Sequence record: NC_061443.1
Direction: 5' to 3' (one strand)
Length of the DNA: 64,000 bases
Shown: in pieces, positions 44,343-60,568 of the stretch
Numbering within the stretch: position 1 is the stretch's first letter
Layout: each line of letters starts with the position of its first letter
The notes under the pieces: model-generated
Seen by the model: only the letters and a program-made list of their open reading frames with translations
Told to the model about the DNA's origin: nothing
Database searches by the model: none
Made by a program: the position numbers and the translations under genes

Positions 44343-44370
44343 AAAAGAAAGGGAGAGCCGAAGCCCTCCC
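44343..44370 (-). terminator. Rho-independent terminator
   Basis: minus strand GGGAGGGC-TTCG-GCTCTCCC-TTTCTTTT. Confidence 0.85.
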
Positions 44371-44376
44371 TATGGT

Positions 44377-44616
44377 TTAAAGCTGATCGGAGGTAATCTG
44401 ACCATCTTTATACAGTTCGCGCTTACGCTCTTTCCATGTTGAGGTAAGCTCGGAGAAGAACTCTTTCATGCGCTCGTCATCAAGCTCGAAAGGTTGATTC
44501 ACTTCGTACTTACCACACAGGGCGTTGAACGTATTCGCGTATTCCTGCTGTAGGAATGATTTGTCTGCACTGACACTGAGATACTGCTGCGCCGACATAG
44601 CTACTGATACTTGCAT
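44377..44616 (-). CDS. small hypothetical protein with own promoter-like element and terminator
   Basis: AGAGG RBS, TAATTT upstream. Confidence 0.7.
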   Translation of the reverse strand: MQVSVAMSAQQYLSVSADKSFLQQEYANTFNALCGKYEVNQPFELDDERMKEFFSELTSTWKERKRELYKDGQITSDQL

Positions 44617-44632
44617 GATACCATCCTCTTTA

Positions 44633-44666
44633 TTTGACTCGCTTAAATTATCAAGCGAATTTCAAA
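44633..44666 (-). promoter_or_regulatory. hairpin with TAATTT in loop
   Basis: minus strand TTTGAaaTTCGCTT-gaTAATTT-AAGCGAGTCAAA. Confidence 0.55.
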
Positions 44667-45250
44667 ACGAGGTCGTTAATGATAACAGCTTTTGACTGGT
44701 CTGTAGGCGTGGTGCTATTCGCATACACTTTGCCTCCCACCAGCTTCAAGTCTGCATTCGAGTTTTCGTTACCCACAGAGCACACAGTAACGAAGGCCGC
44801 AGGAACATCAGTTACGCCTGTCTGAACGTTGATCGAAGCAGTAGCACCGCCGATGACGATACACCAAGTAGGAGTAGCGTCTTTCGTGAAGTAGCTGGCA
44901 CGATAGTCGGAGAACGTAGCATTCAGACGCATGTTAAACGCAGAGGCTAACATGACGGGCACGTTGTTTGCAGCAAGGGTCATGGCGGCTTTGTTGCCTG
45001 TAACGCCACCAACATAATCCGCAGCCCGTGCTGTAGTCAGAAGCCCCGGACGTTGGTAGATTGCATTAGCTGTCGGGATTTGCGTACCGTCCCCAATCAA
45101 TGTCTGCAACTCTGCTTTAGTTGGCATCGTACCGGTATAGAACAGGATAGCATTCGCAACCGCAGTCATGTTTGTAGGAACAGATGAAGATACCAGAGAG
45201 CTATACGCGTTACGCTGCATCGCATTCGCTGTAGCTGGGAGCATTTTCAT
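44651..45250 (-). CDS. putative virion protein, short paralogue
   Basis: ILFYTGTMPT...CSVGNENSNADLKLVGG. Confidence 0.6.
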   Translation of the reverse strand: MKMLPATANAMQRNAYSSLVSSSVPTNMTAVANAILFYTGTMPTKAELQTLIGDGTQIPTANAIYQRPGLLTTARAADYVGGVTGNKAAMTLAANNVPVMLASAFNMRLNATFSDYRASYFTKDATPTWCIVIGGATASINVQTGVTDVPAAFVTVCSVGNENSNADLKLVGGKVYANSTTPTDQSKAVIINDLVLKFA

Positions 45251-46161
45251 TACACGCCCTCCAAGAAGTTATCAGCGATGCGAATCGTCAGGTCAGGAAC
45301 AGCCATTTGGCCATACTGCCCAATCGAAGGCGTACTCACTGTCAAGTCGGTACCGATATCAAGCACAATCCCATAATAGTCCTCTTGCACCTGAGACAGG
45401 TACGCTTGAGTACTGGAGGGATTAGCGAGAGTCAACGGCACCAGAACGATGTGAGTCAATGCCGCAACAACGAACTCACTACCACGCTCAACATACGGAG
45501 TGAAGTACATATCGCTGTTGGTAGCTGTACCATTCGTAATCAAGCGCAGTTTACGCGCAACGATATCGAAGCCGTCGTTCATGCCTGCAACAACTACAAT
45601 ACGAGTCCAGACGAGAGTAGTCGGGTCTTGGTATTCGAAGCGCACGTTGCCTGCGTTGATACCAGCGATAGACGGAACGAAGAACGAACGGAAACGCAGG
45701 GTGCGACCGTAGTCATACTCCACGTAATCATCGCCACTCCATCCACTGCCAATTTCGTTCGCTATCTCAGACGCAGCGCCCACCATAGCCATAATCTGCT
45801 GAGGACTTTTGCTTATACCTGCTGTCAGGTTGAAGCGGCTGTACTCTGGGTAAACAGCATACGTCTGAATATTACGTTTGTTTACCGCGTCGTAGCATGT
45901 GCGGCCTTGGCCATACCCGCCGATGGGCATCATGCTACGCCCACGAGAGAACACACGGCAGTAGGTATTGTTTGGGTCTTGCGTCTGTTGCTGATACTTG
46001 TACTCGACAACACAACGGCTTGTCGCTACCAAATCAAGGAATGACTTGGGCACGTTGTTGCTATTGCCGTTACGGAAGAAAGCCATGAACCCGTGAGTGT
46101 TCGCGGTTGTCCCTGCCGTCTGCAATAGCTGATACAACGCTGATTTTTCAGAGACTAACAT
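45250..46161 (-). CDS. putative virion protein, long paralogue with discoidin-like insert
   Basis: VEYDYG...VWTRI...VARKLRLI. Confidence 0.55.
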   Translation of the reverse strand: MLVSEKSALYQLLQTAGTTANTHGFMAFFRNGNSNNVPKSFLDLVATSRCVVEYKYQQQTQDPNNTYCRVFSRGRSMMPIGGYGQGRTCYDAVNKRNIQTYAVYPEYSRFNLTAGISKSPQQIMAMVGAASEIANEIGSGWSGDDYVEYDYGRTLRFRSFFVPSIAGINAGNVRFEYQDPTTLVWTRIVVVAGMNDGFDIVARKLRLITNGTATNSDMYFTPYVERGSEFVVAALTHIVLVPLTLANPSSTQAYLSQVQEDYYGIVLDIGTDLTVSTPSIGQYGQMAVPDLTIRIADNFLEGV

Positions 46162-46170
46162 AGTGCCCCC

Positions 46171-46701
46171 TTAGTATTTGATACGCATATCAGCTAGGCG
46201 CAGAGGCTGACCAGCAGTAACAGTACCACCAACGATTTTCAGATCAGCTGTGGAGTTTTCATCTCCTACAGTACCGACGATAATAACATAGCCTGTACCG
46301 CCGCCTGCGAAGCCTGCAAAAGTATCTGCTGCTGACGCCGATGAAAGACGCATCATGAACCACGTAGGAGTTCCTGATGTAGCGATAGTCGCTAAGTTCT
46401 GCTGGGCACTGAACGGCAGTTGGATAACGTTGTTGTCGTAATCCATGACGATTGGCATAGCGCCGCACATCAAGTCGCCTAGGAAGTTGGTGGCAGTAGC
46501 GAACGGCGCGATAGTAGCAGAAGACCACGTAACGGCGTTAGCAATAGGCGTAATAAGAGCAGACAATTGCGCGTCAGTTGGCATAGTGCCGTTGAACAGA
46601 CCTATGTGCGTAGTGTTGGCTGCGCTGCTTGACCCTGGACTTAGACGAGTGTTAATCGCAACCATGGCCATGAATGAGTTGTACGCTTTAGATACGCGCA
46701 T
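46171..46701 (-). CDS. putative virion protein, short paralogue
   Basis: IGLFNGTMPT...GTVGDENSTADLKIVGG. Confidence 0.6.
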   Translation of the reverse strand: MRVSKAYNSFMAMVAINTRLSPGSSSAANTTHIGLFNGTMPTDAQLSALITPIANAVTWSSATIAPFATATNFLGDLMCGAMPIVMDYDNNVIQLPFSAQQNLATIATSGTPTWFMMRLSSASAADTFAGFAGGGTGYVIIVGTVGDENSTADLKIVGGTVTAGQPLRLADMRIKY

Positions 46702-46702
46702 A

Positions 46703-47761
46703 TTAGTATACCTCCAATGTAATCGGCGTATATGAAACAGTGAACGAGCCGACAGCCTGTTCCTGCCCTGGGTACGGAGTTGCGTCAGTGATCAACAGGT
46801 CGAAGTTCGCAGACTGTTTGATATCGTCAGTGACGGTCAGACCGTAATGAGGGAAGAAGCGTCCATAAGAGTTTACCGCCATGTTCTGAGACATAGCAGG
46901 GATGCCGTATGCAGTACCGAAGCCATGAGGGAACATAACCGCGTGCTGCACTTTGCCCAAAGTACGAGGAGCAGAACCAGCAGCGTAGTCCCCATAGAAG
47001 TGCAGAGCAAACGTACCGATACCATTCTGGAATGGGTTGGTGACTGCTTTCGTCACGATACGGAATCGACGCGCTTGTACAGTAGCAGGCAGTTGATAGT
47101 AGCGTTCGCTGTTGGCGGCTGTCTGGAACAGATTGGCCGTGATGCTTGTAACATCGACCCAGCTACTGCCCTGCTGCATCTGCAGGAACGTCATGTTCGC
47201 TGCCGTGTTGCTTAGGATGTTATTGCCGCTTGTGGTGAGTGTGATACTCGCCAAAGAGTTGATAACAACGTCAGCACCGAAGTCGTATTCAGCCAACGTC
47301 CACGAACCGTCTGCGTTAACTGTCTTAACACGACACACAGAGGCCGCAGCAGGAGGCGCAGTGCATGGCGCTTGGAGTGCTGTAGTTGTAGACGCTGCGC
47401 GGTGCCACAGGATAGTTGCGAACAGCATGTCCTGCTGGTACATAGAATAGCTTAGGTTCGTGTCAACAACGTCTTGATAGACTTGGCTGTAGCTGTTGAA
47501 CGTAACTTTAGGCAGAACACGCTTGCCCCGGTAGCCCTGAGCGGTTGTCCATGCTGGTGCAGGAGACGACTGGAGTGCTGTAGTGTTAGGCATCAGCGTG
47601 TGTTGACCGCCACCAATCTGAGACTGAATGAACGCACGAGCACTGATCATGTTGTTCAGCACAGTCTGAATGTCATAGTTCACTGGGTTAGGAAGATTCC
47701 CTTCCATGAATGCGCCGTACATTACAGTAGGTGCGTTTTGGTAAATCGGTAGAATTTTCAT
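46703..47761 (-). CDS. putative virion protein, long paralogue with discoidin-like insert
   Basis: AEYDFG...SWVDVT...VQARRFRIV. Confidence 0.6.
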   Translation of the reverse strand: MKILPIYQNAPTVMYGAFMEGNLPNPVNYDIQTVLNNMISARAFIQSQIGGGQHTLMPNTTALQSSPAPAWTTAQGYRGKRVLPKVTFNSYSQVYQDVVDTNLSYSMYQQDMLFATILWHRAASTTTALQAPCTAPPAAASVCRVKTVNADGSWTLAEYDFGADVVINSLASITLTTSGNNILSNTAANMTFLQMQQGSSWVDVTSITANLFQTAANSERYYQLPATVQARRFRIVTKAVTNPFQNGIGTFALHFYGDYAAGSAPRTLGKVQHAVMFPHGFGTAYGIPAMSQNMAVNSYGRFFPHYGLTVTDDIKQSANFDLLITDATPYPGQEQAVGSFTVSYTPITLEVY

Positions 47762-47830
47762 ATCATGCCCTTGGTTTAAAGACAGTTCAAATTAATGAGG
47801 TGACGCCCAATCAAGAACGCCACCTTCAGA

Positions 47831-48358
47831 TTACAGTTGGAAAGTCATATCGAGGAAGCGATATGCTTGGCCTGTCTTAATCGTACCACCGATGAACTGG
47901 AGTTCAGCATCAGAGCCTTGATCGCCTACAGTACCCATCCACGCAGGACCTGCAAGCAACGTGCCTGTAGAAGACGACAGTACGAAGTTAACCCACGACG
48001 CAGAAGCCGCTCCAGCAGCAGCTACGATACGCGCCACATAGTATGTAGGAGTACCATCAGCAACACCTGTCAGCGTAGCAGCATTTCCGGCAAACGGCAG
48101 AGTCACTGTGCGTGGTCCAACGTTAACAACAGGAGTCATTGCAGCGAATGCGATTGAACCTAAGAAGTTAGCTTGTGTCAGACCTAATGCAGTCACTGCC
48201 TTGAGGTTCCAGCCCGAACCTGGTAGTTGCGAGAAGATCTGATTGAAATCAGGCTTGGGCCCTTTGAACAACGCGATGTGAAGCGTGTTCGCCGCAATCG
48301 CTGTGGCAGGGAACCCACCATTGATTGCGGCGAGTGATGCACCTTTGTTGCTAATCAT
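47831..48358 (-). CDS. putative virion protein, short paralogue
   Basis: IALFKGPKPD...GTVGDQGSDAELQFIGG. Confidence 0.6.
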   Translation of the reverse strand: MISNKGASLAAINGGFPATAIAANTLHIALFKGPKPDFNQIFSQLPGSGWNLKAVTALGLTQANFLGSIAFAAMTPVVNVGPRTVTLPFAGNAATLTGVADGTPTYYVARIVAAAGAASASWVNFVLSSSTGTLLAGPAWMGTVGDQGSDAELQFIGGTIKTGQAYRFLDMTFQL

Positions 48359-49434
48359 ACGCCCCTCCCAATAATAGACGCGAGTTGCACACGGAACGAA
48401 GGTACAGGCACTGCACCGAATGACGTATTGTACGTCGTGTCCAGCATGTTGATATCGAAGTTCGCCGCCTGCTTGATATCGTCAGTGATAGTCAAGTGCA
48501 TCATCGCACAGTAACGACTCTGTACGGTAGTGACTGCCGCAGGCCAGTTGAAATACCAAGTCGCTGTTGGAGAGTAAGCAGCAGCGGCCTGCAGGTGCAA
48601 CACTGTCATGTGCTTGTACTTGCCTAACGTGCGGGGCTTCTGATCTGTGTACGTTGCATAGAACTGCAAGCCGAACGGATAGTGCCCGGTAGTAGACCAA
48701 GGCCACGCAACAGTTTTGTTCACCAGTCTAAATTTCTGCGCTTTGACTTTCGTCGGCAGTTCGTAAGTAACAGCCGTGTTGTTGGTGGTGGTACGCAGGT
48801 TGTCATAGGTGTGTATAACATCAGTCCACGCGCCGTTAACGAACGCTTGCACATAGGTCTGTTGAGTACCCATAACCATCTGACCCGCAACGGCCGCACC
48901 CATCGAGTAGCCAACCAGAGCACCCAGCTCAATCTCCGCGCCGAAGTCATACTCCGCACACAGATACCAGCCTTCATCAGTCAAGTTATACTGAGGACTC
49001 AGGTTGTTCGCTACGTTCGACAGGAAGAAGTCTGTGGATGTAGTCATGCGATGCGCAAGCAGACACGCAGCAACCGCTTCCAGATACTGGTTAAGCGTAG
49101 CGACGAATCGAGGTTCGACGGCAGGCAGCTTAATCTTAGGAATGATGCGACGCTTAATAGTGAACGCACTGCCATATCCATTCGCAACACCATCCATTTC
49201 AATCCACGCAGGAAGAAAACGGCTCGTGTTGAACGAACTGATATCATAAGGCTGATACGACCAACGTGCCGGGTTAGTGCTCATAGTAGTTCTTGCGAAC
49301 AGGCGCATTGCGATAGCGTCATTGATTGCGCTATGCAGAGACTTCTCACCATTCGCTGGAGCGTCTGTATCGTACAGAAGGCCCAGACAGATGTTTGCAG
49401 AAGCACTCAGGGACTGCGTAGGATAGAGTTCCAT
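48355..49434 (-). CDS. putative virion protein, long paralogue with discoidin-like insert
   Basis: probable start MELYP; AEYDFG...AWTDVI...VKAQKFRLV. Confidence 0.6.
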   Translation of the reverse strand: MELYPTQSLSASANICLGLLYDTDAPANGEKSLHSAINDAIAMRLFARTTMSTNPARWSYQPYDISSFNTSRFLPAWIEMDGVANGYGSAFTIKRRIIPKIKLPAVEPRFVATLNQYLEAVAACLLAHRMTTSTDFFLSNVANNLSPQYNLTDEGWYLCAEYDFGAEIELGALVGYSMGAAVAGQMVMGTQQTYVQAFVNGAWTDVIHTYDNLRTTTNNTAVTYELPTKVKAQKFRLVNKTVAWPWSTTGHYPFGLQFYATYTDQKPRTLGKYKHMTVLHLQAAAAYSPTATWYFNWPAAVTTVQSRYCAMMHLTITDDIKQAANFDINMLDTTYNTSFGAVPVPSFRVQLASIIGRGV

Positions 49435-49435
49435 A

Positions 49436-50014
49436 TTAGCTCCATGCAATGTTGTTGAGGCTGATGGTTCCGTTGAGAGTAAACGTACCATCACCATTGT
49501 CCGTCAGCGGAGCGCCCATACTGATTAGGTCTTGTGGCGTAAGCTCAATCACAGAAGCAATCGCCACAGTTGCAGCCGCAATAACACCCGTACTGTTACC
49601 CAGCAGGATATACATGCGGTTGAACGGCTTAGCATAGCTGAAACGTCCGAGCAGGTTGAACAGGTCAAGCATACGCTTACCCTGCCCTAAGTTTACGACA
49701 CGCACCGAGCCTGTAGATATAGGAGCAGTGTCCATCACACAACCCGGCAGGTTCGCCGTCAAATAAGTACGAAGTGTGTTAAGACTGAACACGGACAGAG
49801 CTTGGTTGTTCCACACTGTATCGGTAATCGTATCTCCAGTAGAAAACACGATAGCCGCTGTACGCTCTGCGCTGATTGTACTACCACCAGCCTGAATGTT
49901 TCCTGCACCGAAAGATGCCATAACGTTCGGCTGCCACGGCAGATCAATGGAAGGGTTTGCAGTAGACCCAAGCGAATCACCACGCATGTTGAGCATAGCT
50001 TTTGAAATATACAT
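49436..50014 (-). CDS. putative virion protein, divergent short paralogue
   Basis: occupies short-gene slot of the array; IVFSTGD. Confidence 0.5.
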   Translation of the reverse strand: MYISKAMLNMRGDSLGSTANPSIDLPWQPNVMASFGAGNIQAGGSTISAERTAAIVFSTGDTITDTVWNNQALSVFSLNTLRTYLTANLPGCVMDTAPISTGSVRVVNLGQGKRMLDLFNLLGRFSYAKPFNRMYILLGNSTGVIAAATVAIASVIELTPQDLISMGAPLTDNGDGTFTLNGTISLNNIAWS

Positions 50015-50916
50015 CAGTTGCTCCTCTGGGTGAATCGCAGTTTAGGGCAGTACATGACCGTCTTCTGCGTAGGGATGATATCGCCGATGATCTTGTAAGG
50101 ACCCTGATTGCCTACGGCACCCGCAGCATACATAATCTCGTCAGAGTAATCAGTATCGCCGTGTGTGAACGTGTTGCAGTGCGCAAGGACAGCCCACGTA
50201 GGTGCGGTTTGTGCGACTGCCGGTGGAGTATCTACAGTAGACAGCAGAATGCGTTGTGCTGTAGCAGTCGTAGGCTTCGTGTACTTATAGCGATAGCGCT
50301 TGGAGGCAACAGGAGTAGACAGCACCAGACATTGTGCATCACCTGCGATAGCGGTCGCCGTACCGAGTGATGTTTCAGTCTGACCATCGTCCGAAAGCGC
50401 AACGAGAACGAACGCGTCACCGTTGCTGCCTGTGAACTTAACGTGCGTGACAGTCGTTGGAGTGTCGAACTCGAAGTCAACGTCACTGGCGAAACGCGCA
50501 GCAGGAACCAGAGTCGAGCCTGAGCTTAAAATCAGCCCGATGCTACGATCAGTAAAGCCTGAACGAGTGATGCGATGAGGCATAAGCTGATAAGCCACAG
50601 TATTAGCGCTGCCAATGGTCCCATAATACGATACCCCTTTAGGAATATACTGAGACTGTAAGGCAAGAGTAAGAACGTTGCCGCTCTCCACACCGCTAAT
50701 AGGATTGCGAATCATGCCGATAGACGTGTTGTACATATCAGCAAGTGACTTGTTATTGAAGGCTGCATCGAAGCCCTCTTTTGACGTAGGCAATTTTGAA
50801 CTAAACGCGAAGATGTTCCAGCCCGCACCCACATTAGGGTCATTGACCAGAGCAGCCAAGTTCGAGTTGGAGCCCACCATTGCCTGCGCCATGATGCGAG
50901 TATTAATAATCTTCAT
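50014..50916 (-). CDS. putative virion protein, long paralogue with discoidin-like insert
   Basis: DFEFDTPTTVTHV...LSDDG...VASKRYRY. Confidence 0.55.
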   Translation of the reverse strand: MKIINTRIMAQAMVGSNSNLAALVNDPNVGAGWNIFAFSSKLPTSKEGFDAAFNNKSLADMYNTSIGMIRNPISGVESGNVLTLALQSQYIPKGVSYYGTIGSANTVAYQLMPHRITRSGFTDRSIGLILSSGSTLVPAARFASDVDFEFDTPTTVTHVKFTGSNGDAFVLVALSDDGQTETSLGTATAIAGDAQCLVLSTPVASKRYRYKYTKPTTATAQRILLSTVDTPPAVAQTAPTWAVLAHCNTFTHGDTDYSDEIMYAAGAVGNQGPYKIIGDIIPTQKTVMYCPKLRFTQRSN

Positions 50917-51374
50917 TAGCTCACCACCGGTACGGCAGATTTGTTGTTCGCTTTAGTGTCAGACAGGTCAAGCGCACCAACAGTTACACGGAAGACGATG
51001 TTATCGAACAGCGGGTCGATCGTCTGATCAGTAACGAACTGTCCACTGACAAGAGGAATGTCTATGCGAGGAGCTGCCAGATTAGAGGCGAACGTTCTTG
51101 GCACAAACTTACTGACTACTTGACCTACCGCGTTAGCAACAAACAGCACTTGGTCCAATGCTGAAATCTGCTGGCGCTGAATCCAAGACAAGCGACCTTG
51201 AGTATACACTACCTGTGGGACAGTAGCGCTCGTCTGTTGGGCAATTGGTCCTGAAATAGATTCGTTGGTCACACGCTTAGACGGTTGAGAAGCAGAGCTT
51301 ACTTCGACCTGAGACAAAACGAACACGAAGTCCGCGAACATGTCCGGGTCATACGTTACGACTGGTACGAACAT
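50916..51374 (-). CDS. putative virion protein
   Basis: coupled within array; RVTVGALDL C-terminus. Confidence 0.5.
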   Translation of the reverse strand: MFVPVVTYDPDMFADFVFVLSQVEVSSASQPSKRVTNESISGPIAQQTSATVPQVVYTQGRLSWIQRQQISALDQVLFVANAVGQVVSKFVPRTFASNLAAPRIDIPLVSGQFVTDQTIDPLFDNIVFRVTVGALDLSDTKANNKSAVPVVS

Positions 51375-51376
51375 GA

Positions 51377-52468
51377 TTAGGCTCCTTGGCGGATCGCGTA
51401 GTTGTTGATGATAGGAGTATACGCTGCGTTGGCCTGTGCTGCATATCCACCAGTCACTTGCATACCCACTGTTGCAGGCTTGAGAACAGCATACACAAAC
51501 GTATCTACCACAGTACCGTCGATAGAGATTTTATGCGTAGACGTTGGAGCGTCATACTCATATTTGAGGTGAACAGTGCTGCCTCCCCAGAGTGCTGAGT
51601 AAGGAGAGATAGGGCGAACTACTTTAGCCGCAGCGGTACCGCCACCGACGTTATTCCACAGACAGAAGCCTTTCTCGTTCGAACGGTCGAAGGCGATAGT
51701 GAGGCGGTCTGTCAGCGATGCACTTGTACGCAGGAACGTCCACTCTGCATAGTCTGCGTTACCTGACTGGTGGTAGTCACATTCGACTGAGAACGACTTG
51801 CTTGGGTCAAACGTGGACGATGTTGCCAACGTCACGTTACCTGTTGTGCCTAAGTCAACACCAGAGCCGTCAGCAGCAAACTTCAAGTTACCGCTGGTGG
51901 TAGCATTGTTGCCTACGAGATCAGTGAACGCGCCTGTGTTGAAAGTACCGACAGAGAACGCAGCACGTTCTGTACCTGTGAGCCACGTAATGCCAGTATT
52001 CTCGGTCCACATCTGAGTAAGACTGATAGTGAACGCATTAATCGTTACCTGAGTCTTATATCCATTCGGGTCATAACGAACAACAAGGTCAGGATAGAGC
52101 AGCGTGACGTCAGGGCCAACTTGCAAACATACAGGCAGGATGCCACCGAGAATGAGGTGTGTAGGAACACCTTCAGCGGTAGCCGTCAACAGGCAGTCAG
52201 AGATGGACAGCTTATTGCGGTCGATAGTACGAACGCAGTTAGTGCCTTTCGCCAGCACGGTGCAGATGCCGCTAGACGCAGCAAGCGCAGCATCGAACAT
52301 GTAACCCGCACCAGTCTGAGGCTGATAATTAAGGCACTTGTTCAGGTCAGCCTCAACGAATCCGCTATTCAGTTTCACCAGATAGCAGGACTTATCGTCT
52401 GCCGTTGCCTGAGCGAATAGACGCGTCAACTGAGGCACGACAGAGTTTGCAAATAACTTGTAGTTCAT
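51377..52468 (-). CDS. putative virion protein with C-terminal LamG/ConA-like lectin domain
   Basis: probable start MNYKLF; GVDLG...FDPSKSFSVECDY...HLKYEYD...KISIDG. Confidence 0.55.
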   Translation of the reverse strand: MNYKLFANSVVPQLTRLFAQATADDKSCYLVKLNSGFVEADLNKCLNYQPQTGAGYMFDAALAASSGICTVLAKGTNCVRTIDRNKLSISDCLLTATAEGVPTHLILGGILPVCLQVGPDVTLLYPDLVVRYDPNGYKTQVTINAFTISLTQMWTENTGITWLTGTERAAFSVGTFNTGAFTDLVGNNATTSGNLKFAADGSGVDLGTTGNVTLATSSTFDPSKSFSVECDYHQSGNADYAEWTFLRTSASLTDRLTIAFDRSNEKGFCLWNNVGGGTAAAKVVRPISPYSALWGGSTVHLKYEYDAPTSTHKISIDGTVVDTFVYAVLKPATVGMQVTGGYAAQANAAYTPIINNYAIRQGA

Positions 52469-52469
52469 G

Positions 52470-53426
52470 TTATACCTCGGTGGACAGACGAAGCTGGGCG
52501 ACAGAAGAGAACTCACCAGGACCGAGAGCCGTAGCTAACAGTTCGATTGGCTTGCCGCTACCGATAGCTCCTACTTCACATGCGAAGTAAGTTGGAACGT
52601 AGCTGCCGTTAGCAAGAGCACCATAGTTAGTGTCTTGGATGACAACCAGTGCGCTGCGCATAGTTTTATATGCAGCATTCTGACTAACATCGGATGCAGT
52701 TACAGGCAAGACGCGACGAGTACCAGAGGTCTGGATGAAGCGGAAGCGCTTAGACGAAGTGGTAGGCGTAACAAGTACGTTACCCTCTTGGTTGGCCGCT
52801 AACGTCCATGCACGAGCAGTACCGACAACACCTGCGCCGTCGATAGGAGCAACTGTACCCGCCGCAGCAGAGGACATATCACCCACATCAGACAGAACAG
52901 CGTCGATAGTGACTTCATTATCGAAGGTCAGGTCAGTAGTTGAGAGATGAATACCTGGCATGAGCGCATCGTGAGGAATGCCTGCATAGTCCCACGGCCT
53001 GTAGCCAGCAGCACCGATACCCCACAGCGCTTTGTTGCCTGCGTCATTACTGGTGTTATACGCTGTCTGAATCTGAACCGAAGCAGCACCGTTATAACCG
53101 ACAGGAGTTGCCTTAGACGGATAGTGAACAGTCGCGCCGTTCTTAATCTCATACACATGACCAGAACGTGCTTTCCACCCTTCTTGACGATCCATAAGAG
53201 GCAGCAGACCTTCGGTGGTTGGCCACAGAGTCAAACGAGTAACCGCAACAGCATTGTCGAACAGTTTTCGCATGTCCAGCAGATGCTGAGAGAAGTCGCC
53301 TTGATCAGCAATCGCTGTGTCAAAGAAGAACACGTTAACAGTCTGACCGTTTGCTACGTTCGATGCCCAACCAGAGCCTTGGCTGAGTACACTGAACGGT
53401 AGTAAGTTGTGTCCTAAGATACGCAT
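52470..53426 (-). CDS. putative virion protein, long paralogue with discoidin-like insert
   Basis: DLTFDNEVTIDAV...SSKRFRFI; CEVGAIGSGKPIEL. Confidence 0.55.
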   Translation of the reverse strand: MRILGHNLLPFSVLSQGSGWASNVANGQTVNVFFFDTAIADQGDFSQHLLDMRKLFDNAVAVTRLTLWPTTEGLLPLMDRQEGWKARSGHVYEIKNGATVHYPSKATPVGYNGAASVQIQTAYNTSNDAGNKALWGIGAAGYRPWDYAGIPHDALMPGIHLSTTDLTFDNEVTIDAVLSDVGDMSSAAAGTVAPIDGAGVVGTARAWTLAANQEGNVLVTPTTSSKRFRFIQTSGTRRVLPVTASDVSQNAAYKTMRSALVVIQDTNYGALANGSYVPTYFACEVGAIGSGKPIELLATALGPGEFSSVAQLRLSTEV

Positions 53427-53923
53427 TAGAACTCCTTAGAATCTTTGACAACGGTAGCGAGGAACTTACCGTTACGCAGGTTAGCTGAGGTCAGAATCAA
53501 ATCTGCACCAGAGCCTGCAGCGCCGATAGTTAGAATCAGGAAGCCGCCGTACGGAGTGCTTGCGATATCTTTGTTGAAGACAATCACGTTGTACGTGCTC
53601 AACAGAGTTGTTATATCACCTGCAAAAGTACCTTGCAGCGTAGCAGCCAGGCGGAACTTGTACTTGTTATCTTGACCATGAATCCAACGCACAGGGTTTG
53701 TGCTAACTGTGGTCAAGTCGAGGACAGCAGTTGCACCAATAGCAGTCTGAACCGTGGTACCATCAGCAACGACGATGTTTGCAGGGTCAGGTACTTTGGC
53801 TAAACAGATTGTCTTCTGCATGTTAGACAGGCCGTATTTCAATGGCGGGTCAGAAGCAGGACGTTTTCCCGCATCTGGAATCGTAATGCCATTGACGACC
53901 AAAGGGAACGAAACTATTTCCAT
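53426..53923 (-). CDS. putative virion protein, short paralogue
   Basis: LTIGAAGSGADLIL. Confidence 0.55.
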   Translation of the reverse strand: MEIVSFPLVVNGITIPDAGKRPASDPPLKYGLSNMQKTICLAKVPDPANIVVADGTTVQTAIGATAVLDLTTVSTNPVRWIHGQDNKYKFRLAATLQGTFAGDITTLLSTYNVIVFNKDIASTPYGGFLILTIGAAGSGADLILTSANLRNGKFLATVVKDSKEF

Positions 53924-53986: not shown

Positions 53987-55033
53987 CTATAAAGTGAAAC
54001 GTTTTGGCAACACGACCGGCTCATACGTGTTGAACGTGCCTGTCAATATCTCGGTAGGCAGTACATGACCAGCAACAGCAAAGTCCGTGTTGACCTTAGA
54101 CACTACGGCGTACACAGGAGCTTTAACATCGAACGCAATTGGCATCATACCCCAAGCGATATCAACCGCAGGCGTATCTGCCGTAGTGCCCGTACCGAAG
54201 TAGATATTCTCAGGTACTGTCACTTGAGAAGACCCGTACGCTCCGGCCGAGTTAGTCGTGCTATAGCTCCAACCGCCGCCTGAGAAGTAATACGTTCCGT
54301 AGACACGAGTACGGTAGGCAGAGAATAGTCTCGGCCATGCTGCACCAACAGTGCCAAGATTGTATTGTGTCTTGGCGGATATGCTGCCCATGCTCGCTGA
54401 CGAGTAAGTCAACGTCAACACCTCAGGCGATGCTGTGGTCGTCAGGTAGATGTTCTGGATATACGAACTTATATCTTCTGACCAACGACCTATGCCACTA
54501 CTCGGACCATTGATTGTGCCAGAGGAAGAAGCACTGGTCGTGATGGCGTTGTCGTTCGTCTGATTGAGTGTGCAAGCAAACACGGTACCATCGAATGCAG
54601 GCAGCACCATATCAAAATAGCCGGGCAGAGTCGTTGCACCATTTGAAAGAGTGGGCAACAAACTGCATGAGCCTGTCCAGGCGTTTCCAACATAGTCATC
54701 CCGACCTATGCTGTAATAACGGCAGAACATATCCGTAGCAGACACCTGCTTGGTGTTGGTGCCCTCAATCAAACTGTTGGAGATTAGAGCACTCGGTACA
54801 TAGTTGTAATACAGGCGCCCTGCTCTCCATCCTGCTGTGCGCACACACTTCATGTTCCGGTCAACATCAGCCAGAGCGCAAAAGGAACGTGATTTGTTGA
54901 TCTTATCAATCAGGTCAGTGTACGAGGACTTTCTGTCCGGAGGAACAACATCGGAAGCAAACAAAAACATACGCTTCCGTGCTATCTCTATCTTCTTTTC
55001 GAGCAACTGAGATCCGTTCGAAACGAATAACAT
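53987..55033 (-). CDS. putative virion protein, second paralogue family
   Basis: MLFV...MFLFASD; S/T/G/Y-rich. Confidence 0.55.
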   Translation of the reverse strand: MLFVSNGSQLLEKKIEIARKRMFLFASDVVPPDRKSSYTDLIDKINKSRSFCALADVDRNMKCVRTAGWRAGRLYYNYVPSALISNSLIEGTNTKQVSATDMFCRYYSIGRDDYVGNAWTGSCSLLPTLSNGATTLPGYFDMVLPAFDGTVFACTLNQTNDNAITTSASSSGTINGPSSGIGRWSEDISSYIQNIYLTTTASPEVLTLTYSSASMGSISAKTQYNLGTVGAAWPRLFSAYRTRVYGTYYFSGGGWSYSTTNSAGAYGSSQVTVPENIYFGTGTTADTPAVDIAWGMMPIAFDVKAPVYAVVSKVNTDFAVAGHVLPTEILTGTFNTYEPVVLPKRFTL

Positions 55034-55041
55034 AATCGCCT

Positions 55042-55992
55042 CTATAACTTGATGCTGTCTGTCTTATACAGAACGGGTAATTCAGGTAACGCAACAGAGA
55101 ACGTATTCCCTACGTTTGTGGTACGTTGTGTGAAGTCATCGGGTCCGTATTTTACCACACGAACTCGCGTTCCTTCGTTAATGAATACTGCGAATTTGTC
55201 TAACGTGATCGTACCTTCTGCCAGAGCACTTGAACCATAAACAGCAGAACAAGGAACATTTCGGCCGCTATCAAATGCGTTACGGCGCGTAGGAGTAGTT
55301 GCACGCCAGTAGCCTCCATCCGACACTTGATTGAGGTAAGCACCCATAGAGAATGCCATAGCACCAGCAACGCTTGACTGCCACGATGAATAGCTCGTAC
55401 CTGTAAATGTGTACGACCAAGAGTGCGGTGTTATGCGAGCCTCTTGAGATCCAGTAGCGGTATAAATTCGTCTGCGGTGCGTGTACGAATCTCCTGTCTG
55501 ACGCGATGCCGTAGTTACTGTCACCTGCGTATCAGGGAATGATATCTGGTTCGTGGTAGGCGCCGCATTCTGCCCTATCTGAGTCGGAATCAAACAGAAA
55601 GGCGTAGCCCACCACGTATCAGTGTTCCCAGGAAAGGGAGTGCTATTGGCGAAGTTATCAATCATTGTCATTTGACCGCTCTTGCGACCGGACCCGTCCT
55701 TCAGTCCCGTCACAAGTAATGTTCGAAAGATAGCATCATCGGATGTAAAGTCCGGCTCCTCCGACATTAAGGTCAGTTTTGAATAATACACGCGAGCGCC
55801 GGTACCGTACGCAGCGATGCCCATAACAGGGTGAGCCGTAAAGCTATTACCTGCTTGAGCCGCTACTGAGCAACGACTGTTTCTTATAAGATCTCGTAGT
55901 TCACTCACTGAACTGAAATCTATGGTCTGCCCGGAGTCAAAGAAGAATCCGTACTTACGCACATCATCCTGTTTAGGAAGTACGAGTTGCAT
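55042..55992 (-). CDS. putative virion protein, second paralogue family
   Basis: YGFFFDSG...RNSRC. Confidence 0.55.
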   Translation of the reverse strand: MQLVLPKQDDVRKYGFFFDSGQTIDFSSVSELRDLIRNSRCSVAAQAGNSFTAHPVMGIAAYGTGARVYYSKLTLMSEEPDFTSDDAIFRTLLVTGLKDGSGRKSGQMTMIDNFANSTPFPGNTDTWWATPFCLIPTQIGQNAAPTTNQISFPDTQVTVTTASRQTGDSYTHRRRIYTATGSQEARITPHSWSYTFTGTSYSSWQSSVAGAMAFSMGAYLNQVSDGGYWRATTPTRRNAFDSGRNVPCSAVYGSSALAEGTITLDKFAVFINEGTRVRVVKYGPDDFTQRTTNVGNTFSVALPELPVLYKTDSIKL

Positions 55993-56004
55993 AACCTTTC
56001 CTTA

Positions 56005-57054
56005 TTACATCTGGGTGAGAGACTTATCTGGGAAGAGTTGAGTGTTTGTCAAAGATAAGGCAGCAGTAGACGCCGTTGGAATCGCAGCAGTCTGTACGAG
56101 GTCTTTTCCTTGACCAATTTCACCACGCATAAGATATTTCAAGCCGTTTACTTGGAATGCCATCATACACGAGGTTAAGACAACATCATCCGTGTTTGCC
56201 TTTCCTGTGACTGCTACCCTCATTGGGTACGCAGCTCCATCAGGTCGAGTATATCCAGCATCACCGCTGCCGTTGGCAGGAGTATTCGTCACACTGTTCT
56301 GGTTCACACCGCTGTATGAATATACCATACCGATAGTACGCACAAACGCTATATGATCTAGTAGTGCATACGTGTTGTGTAATGAAGCTACTTGGTTCGG
56401 TGTTGTTGTGGTATTCAGGTAGACGTAGCCTACAGGAGTACTTTCTGCCAACGCATCCAATCCCAATGACGCACAGTTAAAGCCCGCGTCATAACCACTG
56501 TACGTTCCCCAGAAAGAGTCAACGTAGCGAGAGTATTGAGAACCTGCTTTTGAACTATACGTTTGGAGCTGGACGTTCGTGTTCCTAATTCCTGCAGGGA
56601 AGATAAGCATACAGTTCGACGGCCAGTAATACGATTCAGATGTATCAGCAGAACGTCCGAACTGTCCTGTGAACACAGGATTGCCTGAGGCCCACGTGCT
56701 ATAGTTAGAGGTATCGGAGACCGTAAAGTAACGCGCCACAACAGCGTCTGGTGTCTGCTGTGAGGTATATGAAGCATACCCTCCAGTAACTGACGCAGTA
56801 TTAACGAGTCGAGCACTACGCGCAGGATAGAAGAAGTTATCTTTAACGCCACTCATTGGACTGAGTGTAACAGCGTTCTCCGTACCGCCAGGGGAGTTAC
56901 CCCAAGCTCGGGCGCCTTTAATCTTCGACAGATACTTTGTACTGTTTAAATGTGCGTCTGATATGTCCGTGGCCGCGTCGAAGTACAGCGCACGGTGCGC
57001 AGCCAACAATGCAATCTTGTTGGCCTTGATTGGATGTGGTGTTGCGAATAGCAT
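56005..57054 (-). CDS. putative virion protein, second paralogue family
   Basis: MLFA...ALYFDAA. Confidence 0.55.
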   Translation of the reverse strand: MLFATPHPIKANKIALLAAHRALYFDAATDISDAHLNSTKYLSKIKGARAWGNSPGGTENAVTLSPMSGVKDNFFYPARSARLVNTASVTGGYASYTSQQTPDAVVARYFTVSDTSNYSTWASGNPVFTGQFGRSADTSESYYWPSNCMLIFPAGIRNTNVQLQTYSSKAGSQYSRYVDSFWGTYSGYDAGFNCASLGLDALAESTPVGYVYLNTTTTPNQVASLHNTYALLDHIAFVRTIGMVYSYSGVNQNSVTNTPANGSGDAGYTRPDGAAYPMRVAVTGKANTDDVVLTSCMMAFQVNGLKYLMRGEIGQGKDLVQTAAIPTASTAALSLTNTQLFPDKSLTQM

Positions 57055-57065
57055 AGGGTCTCTCC

Positions 57066-58160
57066 CTACAATAAGTATTTAGCAGTAGCGTTGACATAGG
57101 CTACAACATCCGCAGAGAAATTCAAAGATGCCATCTCAGCTATGTTAGTTCCTGTTTGTTTTGCGTCATCTGCCTCACCATCTCCAATAGAAAGAACAAT
57201 CAGTCCTTTGTCTAATGGGTATTCGTATGCAATCGCACCGAATGACAATACACACGGAGGACTGTCATCGGAAGCGACCTTCATAGGTACATATAGAGGC
57301 TCAGCTAGGCCACAGTTGGGAAAATCAGTCAACGTAGGAGAGTACGAGAATCGAACGGTACCTCCGCCTATAGGCCACATCTGAGTTTCTTCCTGAGCAG
57401 CAATGAACATGATGCAAGGCGCATTCGTCGTATACATAGTCGGAAGCACTACTGGCAACGTGTTACCTTGACCGTATTGCTTGGTCGTGTCCGTAGTAGT
57501 CAGGTCAGTTTGCGTCTGCAACGTGTTAGTTTGCGTAAGATAAGCCGCGCTCGACCAATACAGGGTGTACTGATAGTTCCATCCTAGCCATGAGCTTGAC
57601 TCATACTTGGAGATGTTTATCGTCTGTCCATTGAACGTCAAGTTGGCACGAATACCACCAGTGGCCGCAACGCGCATAGAAGCAAGGATAGATTCAGGAA
57701 CAAAGTACATCCTGTTGGTTACTATGCCTGACGTAGGAGAATATGTCTTACCTGCATCAGCACCCAAGAAGTTAGTCTTCAGGTCGCTCATGCCTCCTTT
57801 GGCCGTAGTGGTCGTCACAGTTACATAGCGATAGGCCTGTGTGTCAACAGTCTGACCATCATTCGTTGAGGGATAGTAGTACCAGTCCTTGTTGCCTCCA
57901 TTCTGATTGAACCCAAGCATGTCTGATGTATGTGCAACGTAGTGCTTGTTGTTCTTAATACCCGACAGTGCGGTTGTCTTCCCATTGGAGCCGGAGAATC
58001 CCCATGAAGTGCCACGGCAGTACGGAACATTCTTGAGCAGGTTAGCACGAGATTGCTTCACCACTGTCTTGTCTATCGTTGAATCAAATAGGAAGAGTGC
58101 AGACAGCGCATCCTTGCGTATCTTATTAACCTTAACAGCTCCGACAGAATGAAACTGCAT
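57066..58160 (-). CDS. putative virion protein, second paralogue family
   Basis: MQFH...ALFLFDST; LSIGDG C-terminal motif. Confidence 0.55.
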   Translation of the reverse strand: MQFHSVGAVKVNKIRKDALSALFLFDSTIDKTVVKQSRANLLKNVPYCRGTSWGFSGSNGKTTALSGIKNNKHYVAHTSDMLGFNQNGGNKDWYYYPSTNDGQTVDTQAYRYVTVTTTTAKGGMSDLKTNFLGADAGKTYSPTSGIVTNRMYFVPESILASMRVAATGGIRANLTFNGQTINISKYESSSWLGWNYQYTLYWSSAAYLTQTNTLQTQTDLTTTDTTKQYGQGNTLPVVLPTMYTTNAPCIMFIAAQEETQMWPIGGGTVRFSYSPTLTDFPNCGLAEPLYVPMKVASDDSPPCVLSFGAIAYEYPLDKGLIVLSIGDGEADDAKQTGTNIAEMASLNFSADVVAYVNATAKYLL

Positions 58161-58828: not shown

Positions 58829-59116
58829 TTAGGCGATTCGCACTTCACCCGTAACAGGGTACGGGAAAGTCACTTTGACTGTATTAACATCCACAATGAT
58901 AACGTCGAGCGGCAGGACCTGATGGAGTTTACCATCTGGCTGCATCGTACACGTAGTCACTGCGACCATACGTCCGAAGTTGTGCGTAATCGTCCATTCA
59001 GCAGCAGGCGTTTCTTGCTTGAAGCTACGCCCCATAGAATAGTTGATCATAAGTTCCTCACAATTCATATGTGTATTGTGGTTCTGGCACGTTAAGTCGT
59101 GCAGTACCGTTTCCAT
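58829..59116 (-). CDS. small W-x-I-x-HN(L/F)G repeat virion protein
   Basis: EWTITHNFG...VKVTF; true start may be MGRSFK. Confidence 0.55.
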   Translation of the reverse strand: METVLHDLTCQNHNTHMNCEELMINYSMGRSFKQETPAAEWTITHNFGRMVAVTTCTMQPDGKLHQVLPLDVIIVDVNTVKVTFPYPVTGEVRIA

Positions 59117-59960
59117 TCATCACAGGAGCTACTTGAGCAAGCTCAGACTCGGCAAGCATTGCTATATGCAGAGTCTTTTTCTCGTCAACGATTGCAGCCA
59201 TTCCCCATGTAGGAACAGAGACACCTGGTGTTTTGCCTGATACAGCGTGATATAGATTCGGCACGCCCCAGTACAGAGTGTAGTAGGTGCCGCCTGAGTT
59301 GTTATAGTTCACCACTCGCGCCACAGCAGAATAAGACATAGCCGCAGCCGAGATAGCGTTACCTGTAACTACTTGGTAGCTATTACTGTTCCACGCGAAG
59401 CCATTGCCTGCGACAACCAGATTAGCATCGAGAGTAGCAGGATAGGTGTACAGGGTCATACTCACACCGTACATCGTATTTCCAACCCACCCATTCAGCA
59501 AACTGTCAGACATGATAGGCAGAGTCTTGTTTATGCCGTGTGTAGCTAAAGCCACAGGCCCTGACGAATCGTTGCCTTTAGTCATCATGCCCATATCATC
59601 AGACATATCTAAAGCGAACTGGCGCTCCATGTAACGATAACTTGGAACGGTCGGAGCATTAACAGGAGCGAGCGATCCTGTCACAATTCCTTTGTTGCTT
59701 GTCCACGTATGGAATATAAAGCGTGTATGTAACCACTGCCTTGTTCCATCAGCACTGATACCGGCAGCCGGGTTAAGAGGTATAGTGCCGTCAGCAGCGA
59801 AGTCCTTAGCGCTCGTAACGGACTTCTCGGCACACAATTTCACGAAGTCTGTCCAAGTAAGAATACTCAGGTCCGGTTTTGGAGTAGACGCATCGAACAG
59901 GAACAGACTTCGCTCTATCATATGCTTTTTGACGCTACGGAAATTTTGTGCGAAAAGCAT
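59058..59960 (-). CDS. putative virion protein, second paralogue family
   Basis: MLFA...SLFLFDAS. Confidence 0.55.
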   Translation of the reverse strand: MLFAQNFRSVKKHMIERSLFLFDASTPKPDLSILTWTDFVKLCAEKSVTSAKDFAADGTIPLNPAAGISADGTRQWLHTRFIFHTWTSNKGIVTGSLAPVNAPTVPSYRYMERQFALDMSDDMGMMTKGNDSSGPVALATHGINKTLPIMSDSLLNGWVGNTMYGVSMTLYTYPATLDANLVVAGNGFAWNSNSYQVVTGNAISAAAMSYSAVARVVNYNNSGGTYYTLYWGVPNLYHAVSGKTPGVSVPTWGMAAIVDEKKTLHIAMLAESELAQVAPVMNGNGTARLNVPEPQYTYEL

Positions 59961-59971
59961 ATGACTACCTC

Positions 59972-60568
59972 TTAGTACAGAATGACTGTACCGGTTTCAG
60001 GGTTTTCGAAAGTGATCGTAAGCTGGCTCGTGCTGTTATGCACAATAGACTTCGGCTGCACTTCTTTCGTTCCCTGATAGATACGCACCGCTGGATTGTA
60101 TCCCAGATTGTGAGTCACTACCCACTCTGCTTCATCAGTGAATGATGCAGTGAACGCAACGGTAGGAGTAGGAAGCCCGCTTTCGATACCAGACAGCAGT
60201 ACAGCAGTACCTGCAACAGGTTCAGGGAACAACACGATAGTCGTGTTCGCATCCTGAGAGTGAATGGAGGAAGGCATAACAACGTCGCCGTTACTGTCGT
60301 AGCACTGAACGATAGGCGTACCTGTGTTCATGTTGTGCGCGATTTCCCAGCGGCTGGATGCAGATGGTTGTGAGTAACGGAACATCGTCATCTGTTGTGT
60401 CAGCGGTACCCAGATAGGCAGGTCAGAGAACTCAACACAGAACATCAGACGCTTGTCCATGAAGATTGCCATGCCCGGCTGAGGGTTAGTTGGCCAGTCA
60501 GTCACTTCTGCAAATTTGAAGTTCTTGATTGAGCCGAACTCTAAGTCTAAAGTCCCAACGACTTTCAT
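59972..60568 (-). CDS. virion protein with two W-x-I-x-HNLG repeats
   Basis: WEIAHNMN, WVVTHNLG; AGGAG RBS. Confidence 0.6.
   Translation of the reverse strand: MKVVGTLDLEFGSIKNFKFAEVTDWPTNPQPGMAIFMDKRLMFCVEFSDLPIWVPLTQQMTMFRYSQPSASSRWEIAHNMNTGTPIVQCYDSNGDVVMPSSIHSQDANTTIVLFPEPVAGTAVLLSGIESGLPTPTVAFTASFTDEAEWVVTHNLGYNPAVRIYQGTKEVQPKSIVHNSTSQLTITFENPETGTVILY

Follow-up and report, generated by a model that had tools for sequence, protein, structure and literature searches.

An ordered array of long and short paralogs in Erwinia jumbo phage pEa_SNUABM_2, probably encoding bead proteins of the tail periphery

The array and its genes

The stretch of DNA analysed in this work (the window, 64,000 nucleotides) is identical to the corresponding part of Erwinia phage pEa_SNUABM_2 (NC_061443.1, Alexandravirus, 265 kb), a jumbo phage of the fire-blight bacterium, and window coordinates are those of the record. 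Between positions 44651 and 53923 it carries twelve co-oriented open reading frames (ORFs) on the minus strand, running from gp088 to gp077, all twelve annotated as hypothetical. They form an ordered array of long and short genes, most of them paralogs sharing a scaffold, which probably encode small proteins of the phage tail periphery, about half of them provided with a further domain of lectin type.

Read in the direction of transcription, with all coordinates on the minus strand, the array opens with gp088 (53426..53923), a short protein of 165 amino acids (aa) and the most conserved of the set. It is followed by the long gp087 (52470..53426, 318 aa, subfamily LB), by gp086 (51377..52468, 363 aa), where a scaffold of about 150 aa at the N-terminus precedes a putative LamG/ConA-like domain at the C-terminus, and by gp085 (50916..51374, 152 aa), which is kept in all relatives and lies outside the scaffold family. 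Four couples of a long and a short gene come next: gp084 (50014..50916, 300 aa, LB) with the divergent short gp083 (49436..50014, 192 aa); gp082 (48355..49434, 359 aa, a paralog of gp080 in subfamily LA) with gp081 (47831..48358, 175 aa); gp080 (46703..47761, 352 aa, the scaffold together with a discoidin/CBM32-like domain at about residues 150-262) with gp079 (46171..46701, 176 aa, a bare scaffold); and finally gp078 (45250..46161, 303 aa, a divergent LA member) with gp077 (44651..45250, 199 aa). This is exactly the succession, short, long, LamG, other and then long-short repeated four times, which the original prediction had read from the letters. The starts annotated for gp082 and gp086 fall later than those of the longest ORF.

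The short motifs on which that prediction drew can be traced in the proteins, though not to the same extent at both ends. The four N-terminal strings it had quoted, LFNGTMPT, FYTGTMPT, LFKGPKPD and FMEGNLPN, are found literally in gp079, gp077, gp081 and gp080, respectively. The C-terminal motif G(T/S)VG..xS.ADL, which it had attributed to most members, is literal in gp079, nearly so in gp081 and gp077, and represented by a related GSGADL in gp088; for the rest the claim was overstated, as in the long proteins a motif of the GxVG..ADL type becomes visible in profile alignments only. Strict and relaxed patterns of this C-terminal motif gave 0 matches in 24.9 kaa (thousand amino acids) of the other reading frames of the window.

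Homology groups and a common scaffold

Pairwise comparison by BLASTP links only 077/079/081 and 080/082 within the array (gp082 against gp080, 1.5e-24; gp081 against gp079, 1e-17). Profile-profile comparisons with hhalign were built on ortholog alignments, and on merged profiles for the short proteins (S), the long proteins (LA and LB) and a family encoded upstream (U). They join the short proteins (079-081, E 4e-40; 077-079, 1e-23; 077-081, 6e-13) as well as the long ones (080-082, E 3e-51; 084-087, 8e-8; 078-080, 2e-8 over the C-terminal 150 aa or so). The LA and LB profiles align over their full length (E 1.2e-8, 260 columns), which brings together all five long proteins, gp078 being included in LA, and the alignment stays collinear from the N-terminal motif, by way of the discoidin motifs and a PTW-type strand, to the GxVG-type strand near the C-terminus. 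Beyond these two groups the short profile S reaches gp088 (E 7e-4 over 115 columns) and the LB long proteins (E 8e-4), and it comes near to gp083 and gp086 (E around 0.1; for gp083, E 0.09, collinear over the full length).

A deeper hidden Markov model (HMM) of the short family, S6, matches gp088 with an E-value of 8e-6 (residues 57-153). The same model matches two of the long proteins in two pieces, at residues 24-48 and 228-305 of gp087, on either side of the central domain, and at residues 5-59 and 183-271 of gp084, flanking the middle domain, as is expected if the middle domain is an insertion. We may therefore describe the common scaffold, from the profiles and from the model of gp080 presented below, as an N-terminal strand, a G-x-x-P motif, a helix, a PTW-type strand and a GxVG...ADL-type strand, the long proteins being enlarged by a discoidin/CBM32-like domain which separates the N-terminal part from the PTW strand. 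The scaffold that had been proposed from the letters is borne out in this form. The paralogy that went with it, put to profile comparison, holds for 077/079/081 and for 078/080/082/084/087; it is weak, or visible in structure only, for gp088, gp083 and gp086, and it fails for gp085, which has no hhalign profile match to any array family.

Existing annotation resources say little about these proteins. Searches of Pfam and PHROGs over all members returned nothing functional: gp080 and gp082 fall in phrog_22190 and gp081 in phrog_17152, which gp077 also matches (E 2e-25), while gp085 makes up a PHROG of its own, of unknown function. When the short-family profile was run against 1.84 billion representative proteins, at least 150 clusters came up with E≤1e-3, the great majority of 160-215 aa; they constitute a family which, in metagenomes and at 50% identity, counts at least 150 clusters and is devoid of Pfam or functional PHROG annotation. 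One distant metagenome contig codes for two long-family proteins, of 330 and 357 aa, and the gene of each overlaps the next one; behind the 330-aa protein, this next gene codes for a short protein of 182 aa. On another contig, two scaffold proteins have on one side a PTR tail-fibre gene, with a chaperone gene adjoining, and on the other a gene for a PKD-domain protein.

Two folds in the predicted structures

AlphaFold2 models, as monomers and from alignments of 38-39 sequences, were made for gp080 and gp079 only. Both are of good quality by their own measure, the predicted local distance difference test (pLDDT) being 89.8 for gp080 (predicted template modelling score, pTM, 0.90) and 90.9 for gp079. 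Two folds are found in them.

The model of gp080 has 49 Foldseek matches in the PDB at E≤1e-3, and those listed are mostly F5/8C discoidin, neuropilin b1 and CBM32-type domains (TMt 0.4-0.5). The fold of its central domain is thus confirmed, at the level of the model, as a distorted beta-sandwich resembling galactose-binding domains, in the discoidin/CBM32 class. The original prediction, which had seen inserts of this kind in the long proteins, is supported by the predicted fold of gp080 and, by homology, for gp082, gp078, gp084 and gp087, to which the same fold probably extends; it gains nothing from the F5/8C family of Pfam. That the heads of the array bind glycans is suggested by this fold alone. 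Among the orthologs of gp080 variability peaks in several blocks, two of which (171-190 and 211-220) fall inside the discoidin-like domain, others being the linker at 131-150 and the C-terminal scaffold at 281-300; the two inner blocks are the sole hint of ligand-binding loops or a metal site at the open end of the sandwich.

For the bare scaffold of gp079 there is a single significant match in the PDB, 9rkv_A (E 9.3e-5, probability 1.0, TMq 0.47, TMt 0.57). Entry 9RKV is entitled 'Agrobacterium phage 7-7-1 tail fibers', and its paper distinguishes a long and a short fibre from small garland proteins (gp014), which are homodimers; 9rkv_A is presumably the garland protein gp014, because a chain of 139 residues fits the garland and neither the long nor the short fibre. 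Weaker matches concern a baseplate chain of phi812 and A511 gp105 (6hhk; E 0.30-0.36, probability 0.14-0.25, TMq 0.28-0.36); T4 gp8 is not among the matches listed. A second, tentative line comes from sequence: the short-family profile A6, made of 119 sequences taken from the clusters mentioned above, matches 44nx_B among PDB sequences (147 aa; E 0.0033, 20.5 bits, about 100 residues), with the GT..F and GTV..SGAD.I motifs lining up. This chain is fibre I, gp40, of phage A1002 (PMC13730344). Narrower family profiles, A2 among them, had no matches to PDB sequences.

The BFVD collection of viral protein models extends the scaffold to members that sequence joins weakly. There the gp079 model finds short paralogs from Alexandra and Yoloswag and, with entries assigned to orthologs by protein length, putative orthologs of gp083 (Yoloswag, 186 aa, and JA13, 197 aa; E 1.6e-3 and 1.8e-3, probability 1.00), of gp086 (JA13, 339 aa, and Yoloswag, 351 aa; E about 1e-2, probability 0.99, TMq 0.45) and of gp084 (Yoloswag, 297 aa; E 2e-2, probability 0.90), which supports a shared scaffold. 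A single viral genome, the source of the entries A0A1C3NF*, provides further proteins that match the gp079 model, at least four of them short (151-179 aa) and at least six longer (308-402 aa), which suggests that it holds another large long/short array.

The case of gp086 is different in its architecture. Its aligned orthologs are conserved over the first 150 aa or so, where PTH and VGxD motifs occur and which make up a complete scaffold. An appended domain follows, and it is there that two of the nine orthologs match Pfam Laminin_G_3 (best E 7.7e-5); the gp086 of the window itself has no match. A LamG member had indeed been announced at this place in the array; a LamG/ConA-like domain is probable, and it is appended at the C-terminal end rather than inserted.

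Conservation and variation among relatives

Gene order was compared in nine relatives, Y3, Yoloswag, JA29, fHe-Yen9-02, Alexandra, SNUABM_1, SNUABM_7, AD1 and SNUABM_5. It is conserved in all nine, at amino acid identities that go down to about 26-50%, and because the same order has been kept at such low identity the layout of the array is not due to chance. Matches of tblastn to the long and short members are confined to one clade of jumbo phages (51-58 records), which gathers Alexandravirus, Snuvirus, Sasquatchvirus (Y3), Yoloswagvirus, Rivsvirus, Salmondvirus (JA) and Yersinia phage fHe-Yen9-02. Conservation is highest at the head of the array: gp088 is 78-93% identical to its orthologs in Alexandra, SNUABM_1, AD1, SNUABM_7, Y3 and Yoloswag (53% in JA29), and gp077-gp087 are 30-84% identical in the same six phages.

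Within this constant frame, couples and domains come and go. The gp082/gp081 pair is missing from Yoloswag, JA29, SNUABM_5 and fHe-Yen9-02, four lineages that are thus one pair short, and fHe-Yen9-02 has an additional pair beyond gp076, made of a 080-type long and a 079/081-type short gene. In the same phage the gp086 ortholog (locus L005:6603-7055) is reduced to 150 aa, the scaffold alone, with no LamG-like domain.

Some individual records deserve mention. In Alexandra the annotation splits the gp083 ortholog, located between those of gp084 and gp082, into two successive ORFs (one break). The array of pEa_SNUABM_7 has an additional gene of 215 aa (locus L008:2670-3317) between the orthologs of gp088 and gp087; being homologous to part of gp086 (E 1e-12 to 1e-18), it looks like a lineage-specific partial duplication. 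The gp087 ortholog of JA29 (locus L004:4384-5958) reaches 524 aa, against some 318 aa usually. Finally, the 108.5-kb record of Salmonella phage Sen-NF (PV359490.1), labelled a 'complete genome', ends inside a homologous locus, with a gp097-like gene, a gp088-like gene (48% identity) and, at the extreme end, a gene of 301 aa; it looks like the partial genome of a related jumbo phage.

Coupled junctions and transcription signals

Junctions were compared in nine phages, that of the window and eight relatives. From each long gene to its short neighbour the distance is -4 to +1 nucleotides (nt), for every pair and in all nine phages, so that stop and start are coupled; the gaps from a short gene to the next long one span 1-125 nt. 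Taken one by one, the gp084/gp083 junction is -1 or -4 nt and the gp078/gp077 junction -1 to +1 nt in all nine phages, and gp082/gp081 overlap by 4 nt in the five phages (of five) that have the pair. At the head of the array the stop of gp088 overlaps the start of gp087 by 1 nt.

Past gp077 lies gp076 (44377..44616, minus strand, 79 aa), a small conserved protein that ends the array. It is present 3' of the array in ten phages out of ten (42-91% identity), and it has no match to any array family in profile comparison; helical and charged in appearance, it is a candidate assembly factor or partner. It precedes a terminator-like hairpin (44350..44371, minus strand), identified by its match to the consensus only, with a nine-pair stem including 6 GC pairs and a T-rich tail, and likely to be the end of the transcription unit. 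Another hairpin, of 11 pairs, sits at 47798-47825 on the minus strand, in the gap between gp081 and gp080, and with its poor T tail it may serve for processing or attenuation more than for termination. This gap is the sole sizeable one within the array, 66-69 nt in four Alexandravirus/Snuvirus phages and 125 nt, as annotated, in Y3. A scan for sigma-70 promoters performed no better than on shuffled sequence.

Tail-gene context and the upstream family

The array is the end of a late block of about 65 kb on the minus strand, in which genes for the head, tail tube and sheath, baseplate, PAAR protein, tail fibres and gp097 follow one another in this order. Immediately upstream, gp089-gp092 (53987..58160, minus strand; 348, 316, 349 and 364 aa) make up the paralog family U, of which gp095 (59058..59960, minus strand, 300 aa) is an outlying member. 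Within this family U1 and U2 align over their full length (hhalign E 3e-7), and U1 aligns with gp095, which was left out of the profile, over 275 columns (E 6.9e-5). The family is weakly related in turn to the long proteins of the array: U aligns with LA, collinearly over some 300 columns, at E 1.7e-3 to 2.8e-3, and with LB at 4e-3 to 1e-2. A PTW-type strand motif is seen near the C-terminus of gp095, and gp089-gp092 and gp095 share the terminal motifs of the array, the middle region being different. Judging from these alignments, gp089-gp092 are probably further long-type members of the scaffold family with another middle domain. The twelve genes between 44651 and 53923 are all as first delimited, and the array probably reaches upstream, through gp089-gp092 and gp095, to 59960. 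The copy number of family U varies from 0 to 5 among relatives, with a patchy identity of 23-62%, making it the most variable part of the locus.

On its upstream side this variable slot is bordered by the conserved gp097 (60642..62264, minus strand), a virion structural protein (phrog_16122). It is 33% identical, over 573 aligned positions, to gp257 of phage PaBG, which was detected in purified virions of that phage and is listed as a 'putative tail component' (PMC7412058, Table 1). The syntenic slot of PaBG keeps the flanking genes and has large adhesin-like genes inside; two products of this slot were detected in purified virions together with the gp097 homolog (PMC7412058). Three other features of the neighbourhood, all on the minus strand, gp094 (58829-59050), gp096 (59972-60568) and the C-terminus of gp097, have in common a module of about 60 aa (BLASTP 2e-6 to 4e-4). 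For gp096 there is a weak Pfam match to GBD_IRG7_N, a galactose-binding domain (E 0.003), and PaBG has homologs of gp094, gp096 and gp097.

A tail-periphery reading of the array

We lean, by a short head, towards the view that the array supplies the tail periphery with a varied set of 'bead' proteins, small beta-sandwiches that assemble as dimers on a rope, many of them carrying lectin-type heads. In favour of it are the garland match of the gp079 model, the profile match to A1002 gp40, the Milano garland paralogs, the union of the five long proteins in one family with the discoidin-like domain of gp080, the two-piece matches of S6 and the BFVD matches, the tail-gene context here, in PaBG and on the contig with the PTR tail-fibre gene, and the tight long-to-short junctions, found again on a distant metagenome contig. 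The beads would belong to a fold class common to the garlands of 7-7-1 and Milano and to the fibre dimers of A1002, GP4 and VP1, and more distantly to T4 gp8 and A511 gp105. By analogy with these systems, each array protein would dimerise, and the dimers would line up along a 'rope', an extended segment of another tail protein to which they attach by beta-sheet augmentation. The outcome would be a beads-on-a-string fibre or a garland, which might correspond either to a garland of the baseplate or to the hair-like appendages of Y3-type tails. Bare beads would be provided by gp088, gp083, gp081, gp079 and gp077, with gp088 as a possible anchor subunit. Head-bearing beads would be gp087, gp084, gp082, gp080 and gp078, by virtue of their inserted discoidin/CBM32-like domain, and gp086, by virtue of its appended LamG-like domain. 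The lectin-type heads may then establish weak, multivalent contacts with polysaccharides of the host surface during early, reversible adsorption.

A number of observations weigh against this proposal. The similarity to solved beads is modest (TM 0.47/0.57; profile E 0.003), the identity of 9rkv_A being drawn from chain length, and the sequence links from the short proteins to the long ones, to gp083 and to gp086 are weak (E 8e-4 to 0.1). No member matches Pfam F5_F8_type_C, the threshold being E≤1 for gp079-gp088 and E≤0.1 for gp077 and gp078. No candidate for the rope was found; gp085, considered for this role, has no internal repeats above controls and matches nothing. In the literature on Y3, Yoloswag, Alexandravirus and fHe-Yen9-02 we found neither virion proteomics nor cryo-electron microscopy for array-bearing phages. 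The family, moreover, was not detected in the tail modules of three other phages: the syntenic slot of PaBG has no array homologs by HMM or BLAST, the flanking genes alone being shared, the tail module of NCTB (about 42 kb scanned) has no family match, and Lu11 (about 90 kb scanned, structural module at 141-232 kb) has no family member. It follows that the module is not general to this phage group.

Among the alternatives, the one from which the work started sees obligate heterodimers of neighbouring long and short proteins, with one lectin head per bead, building the hairs of hairy jumbo myoviruses. The coupled junctions of every pair in the nine phages speak for it. So does the fact that pairs behave as units of duplication, 082/081 having been gained in the Alexandra-Y3 lineage and the additional pair in fHe-Yen9-02, and paralog trees agree with each other, 080 being nearest to 082 and 079 to 081. 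Known systems allow it too, the Milano garland paralogs having been modelled equally well as heterodimers. Coevolution, however, does not single out neighbours: mirror-tree residuals average -0.03 for neighbours against 0.04 for long/short proteins that are not neighbours, a comparison of nine taxa that has low power. The solved relatives (A1002 gp40 and gp41, 7-7-1 gp014) are homodimers, and the first six genes of the array follow no simple pattern of pairs. As for the hairs, Y3, AD1 and the JA phages have all been reported as hairy and all carry the array, and in Y3 the hairs reportedly sit on the tail sheath; yet Lu11, reported as hairy as well, has no detectable family member at 141-232 kb. 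On balance we regard this alternative as rather doubtful.

A bolder form of the bead proposal would take the array as the parts list of Y3-type hairs. These would be heteropolymeric fibres in which at least eight different dimer beads follow one another in a fixed order on the rope, half of them with different lectin-type heads, the whole repertoire, including the upstream family, making up a fast-evolving adsorption layer. If this were true, one fibre would read several host glycans at once. Attractive as it may be, we think it unlikely.

Still less probable, in our opinion, is a set of fixed connectors of the baseplate periphery, or a closed garland, in the manner of T4 gp8, A511 gp105 or Milano and 7-7-1, with no free fibres or hairs. 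The best structural match is, it is true, a garland entry of 7-7-1, the folds of gp8 and gp105 are related to it (PMC10811340), the array adjoins tail-fibre genes, and the high conservation of gp088 would fit a fixed docking site. Against this, 11-16 fast-evolving paralogs, many of them lectin-headed, exceed what connectors appear to need, and known garlands make use of one or two proteins.

The proteins might also be no part of the virion, and act as lectin-like factors within the infected cell or at its surface, for instance by modifying the host surface or excluding superinfection, or they might decorate the capsid with no connection to the tail. In favour of this, all members are annotated as hypothetical and none has proteomic support, the AD1 and JA11 records label the gp088 ortholog 'putative membrane protein', and a lipoprotein gene and membrane-protein genes lie nearby; we nevertheless consider such readings very improbable, as fold and profile matches point to tail-fibre accessory proteins, the array closes the late structural block, co-oriented and tightly packed, and distant homologs reside inside tail-fibre loci. 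Fibres of the capsid, which the original prediction had also mentioned, find no support and are rated low.

With the bead reading retained as the preferred one, the locus offers a plausible role for about 15 kb of 'hypothetical' genes in more than 50 sequenced phages. It also supplies a concrete candidate for hair-like appendages that are so far unexplained, and models for fitting into tail maps.

Comparison with known bead, garland and lectin systems

Neither the bead fold nor the principle of beads on a rope is new. That principle was first seen with T4 gp8 and A511 gp105, which sit beside the baseplate wedge, are encoded by single-copy genes and have no lectin domains; the match of A511 gp105 to the gp079 model is not significant when taken alone (E about 0.3, TMq up to 0.36). 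The Milano garland proteins share the fold of these 'BW3TFN connectors' (PMC10811340), whose dimers are threaded, as beads on a string, by the extended chain of another protein, and Milano garlands may be threaded likewise. The two Milano proteins, gp125 and gp127, are 30%-identical paralogs with the gene for gp126 in between, and have been modelled as homo- or heterodimers. Together with 7-7-1 gp014, the best structural match of the gp079 model, they are accessory dimers of myovirus tails, and in this respect they come near to what we propose. They differ from the array in that 36 copies of one or two proteins surround the tips of the tail fibres, with neither lectin-type inserts nor an alternating array, and profile searches detect no sequence similarity between the garland proteins and the array.

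The head domains have their own parallels. The central domain of gp080 is predicted to be the same beta-sandwich as that of discoidin and CBM32 domains, and the other four long proteins have the same arrangement of motifs; it differs from discoidin and CBM32 domains by being short (about 110 aa) and nested inside another fold.

The dimer proteins of the chain-like fibres of podoviruses (A1002 gp40/gp41, GP4 gp80, VP1 gp11; PDB 44NX, 8JOU) are likewise small beta-sandwiches, of 140-171 aa. [quoted passage not shown] Two paralogs of low identity, encoded side by side, thus take part in one fibre, as neighbours of the array might do. The rope partner varies, being the N-terminus of gp39 in A1002 and a separate rope protein in GP4. 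A1002, GP4 and VP1 are podoviruses with one or two bead proteins devoid of any additional domain, whereas here a jumbo myovirus has at least 11 paralogs, and probably 16, about half of them with discoidin-like or LamG-like domains. An ordered, alternating array of 11-16 genes with nested discoidin-like and LamG-like domains in jumbo myoviruses appears to be undescribed in the literature we searched. Chain-like fibres and garlands made of small dimer beads were recognised in 2023-2026 only, each with one or two bead proteins, and the present locus suggests that jumbo phages of plant-pathogenic Enterobacterales have enlarged this way of building to 11-16 modular paralogs, many of them with lectin-type domains.

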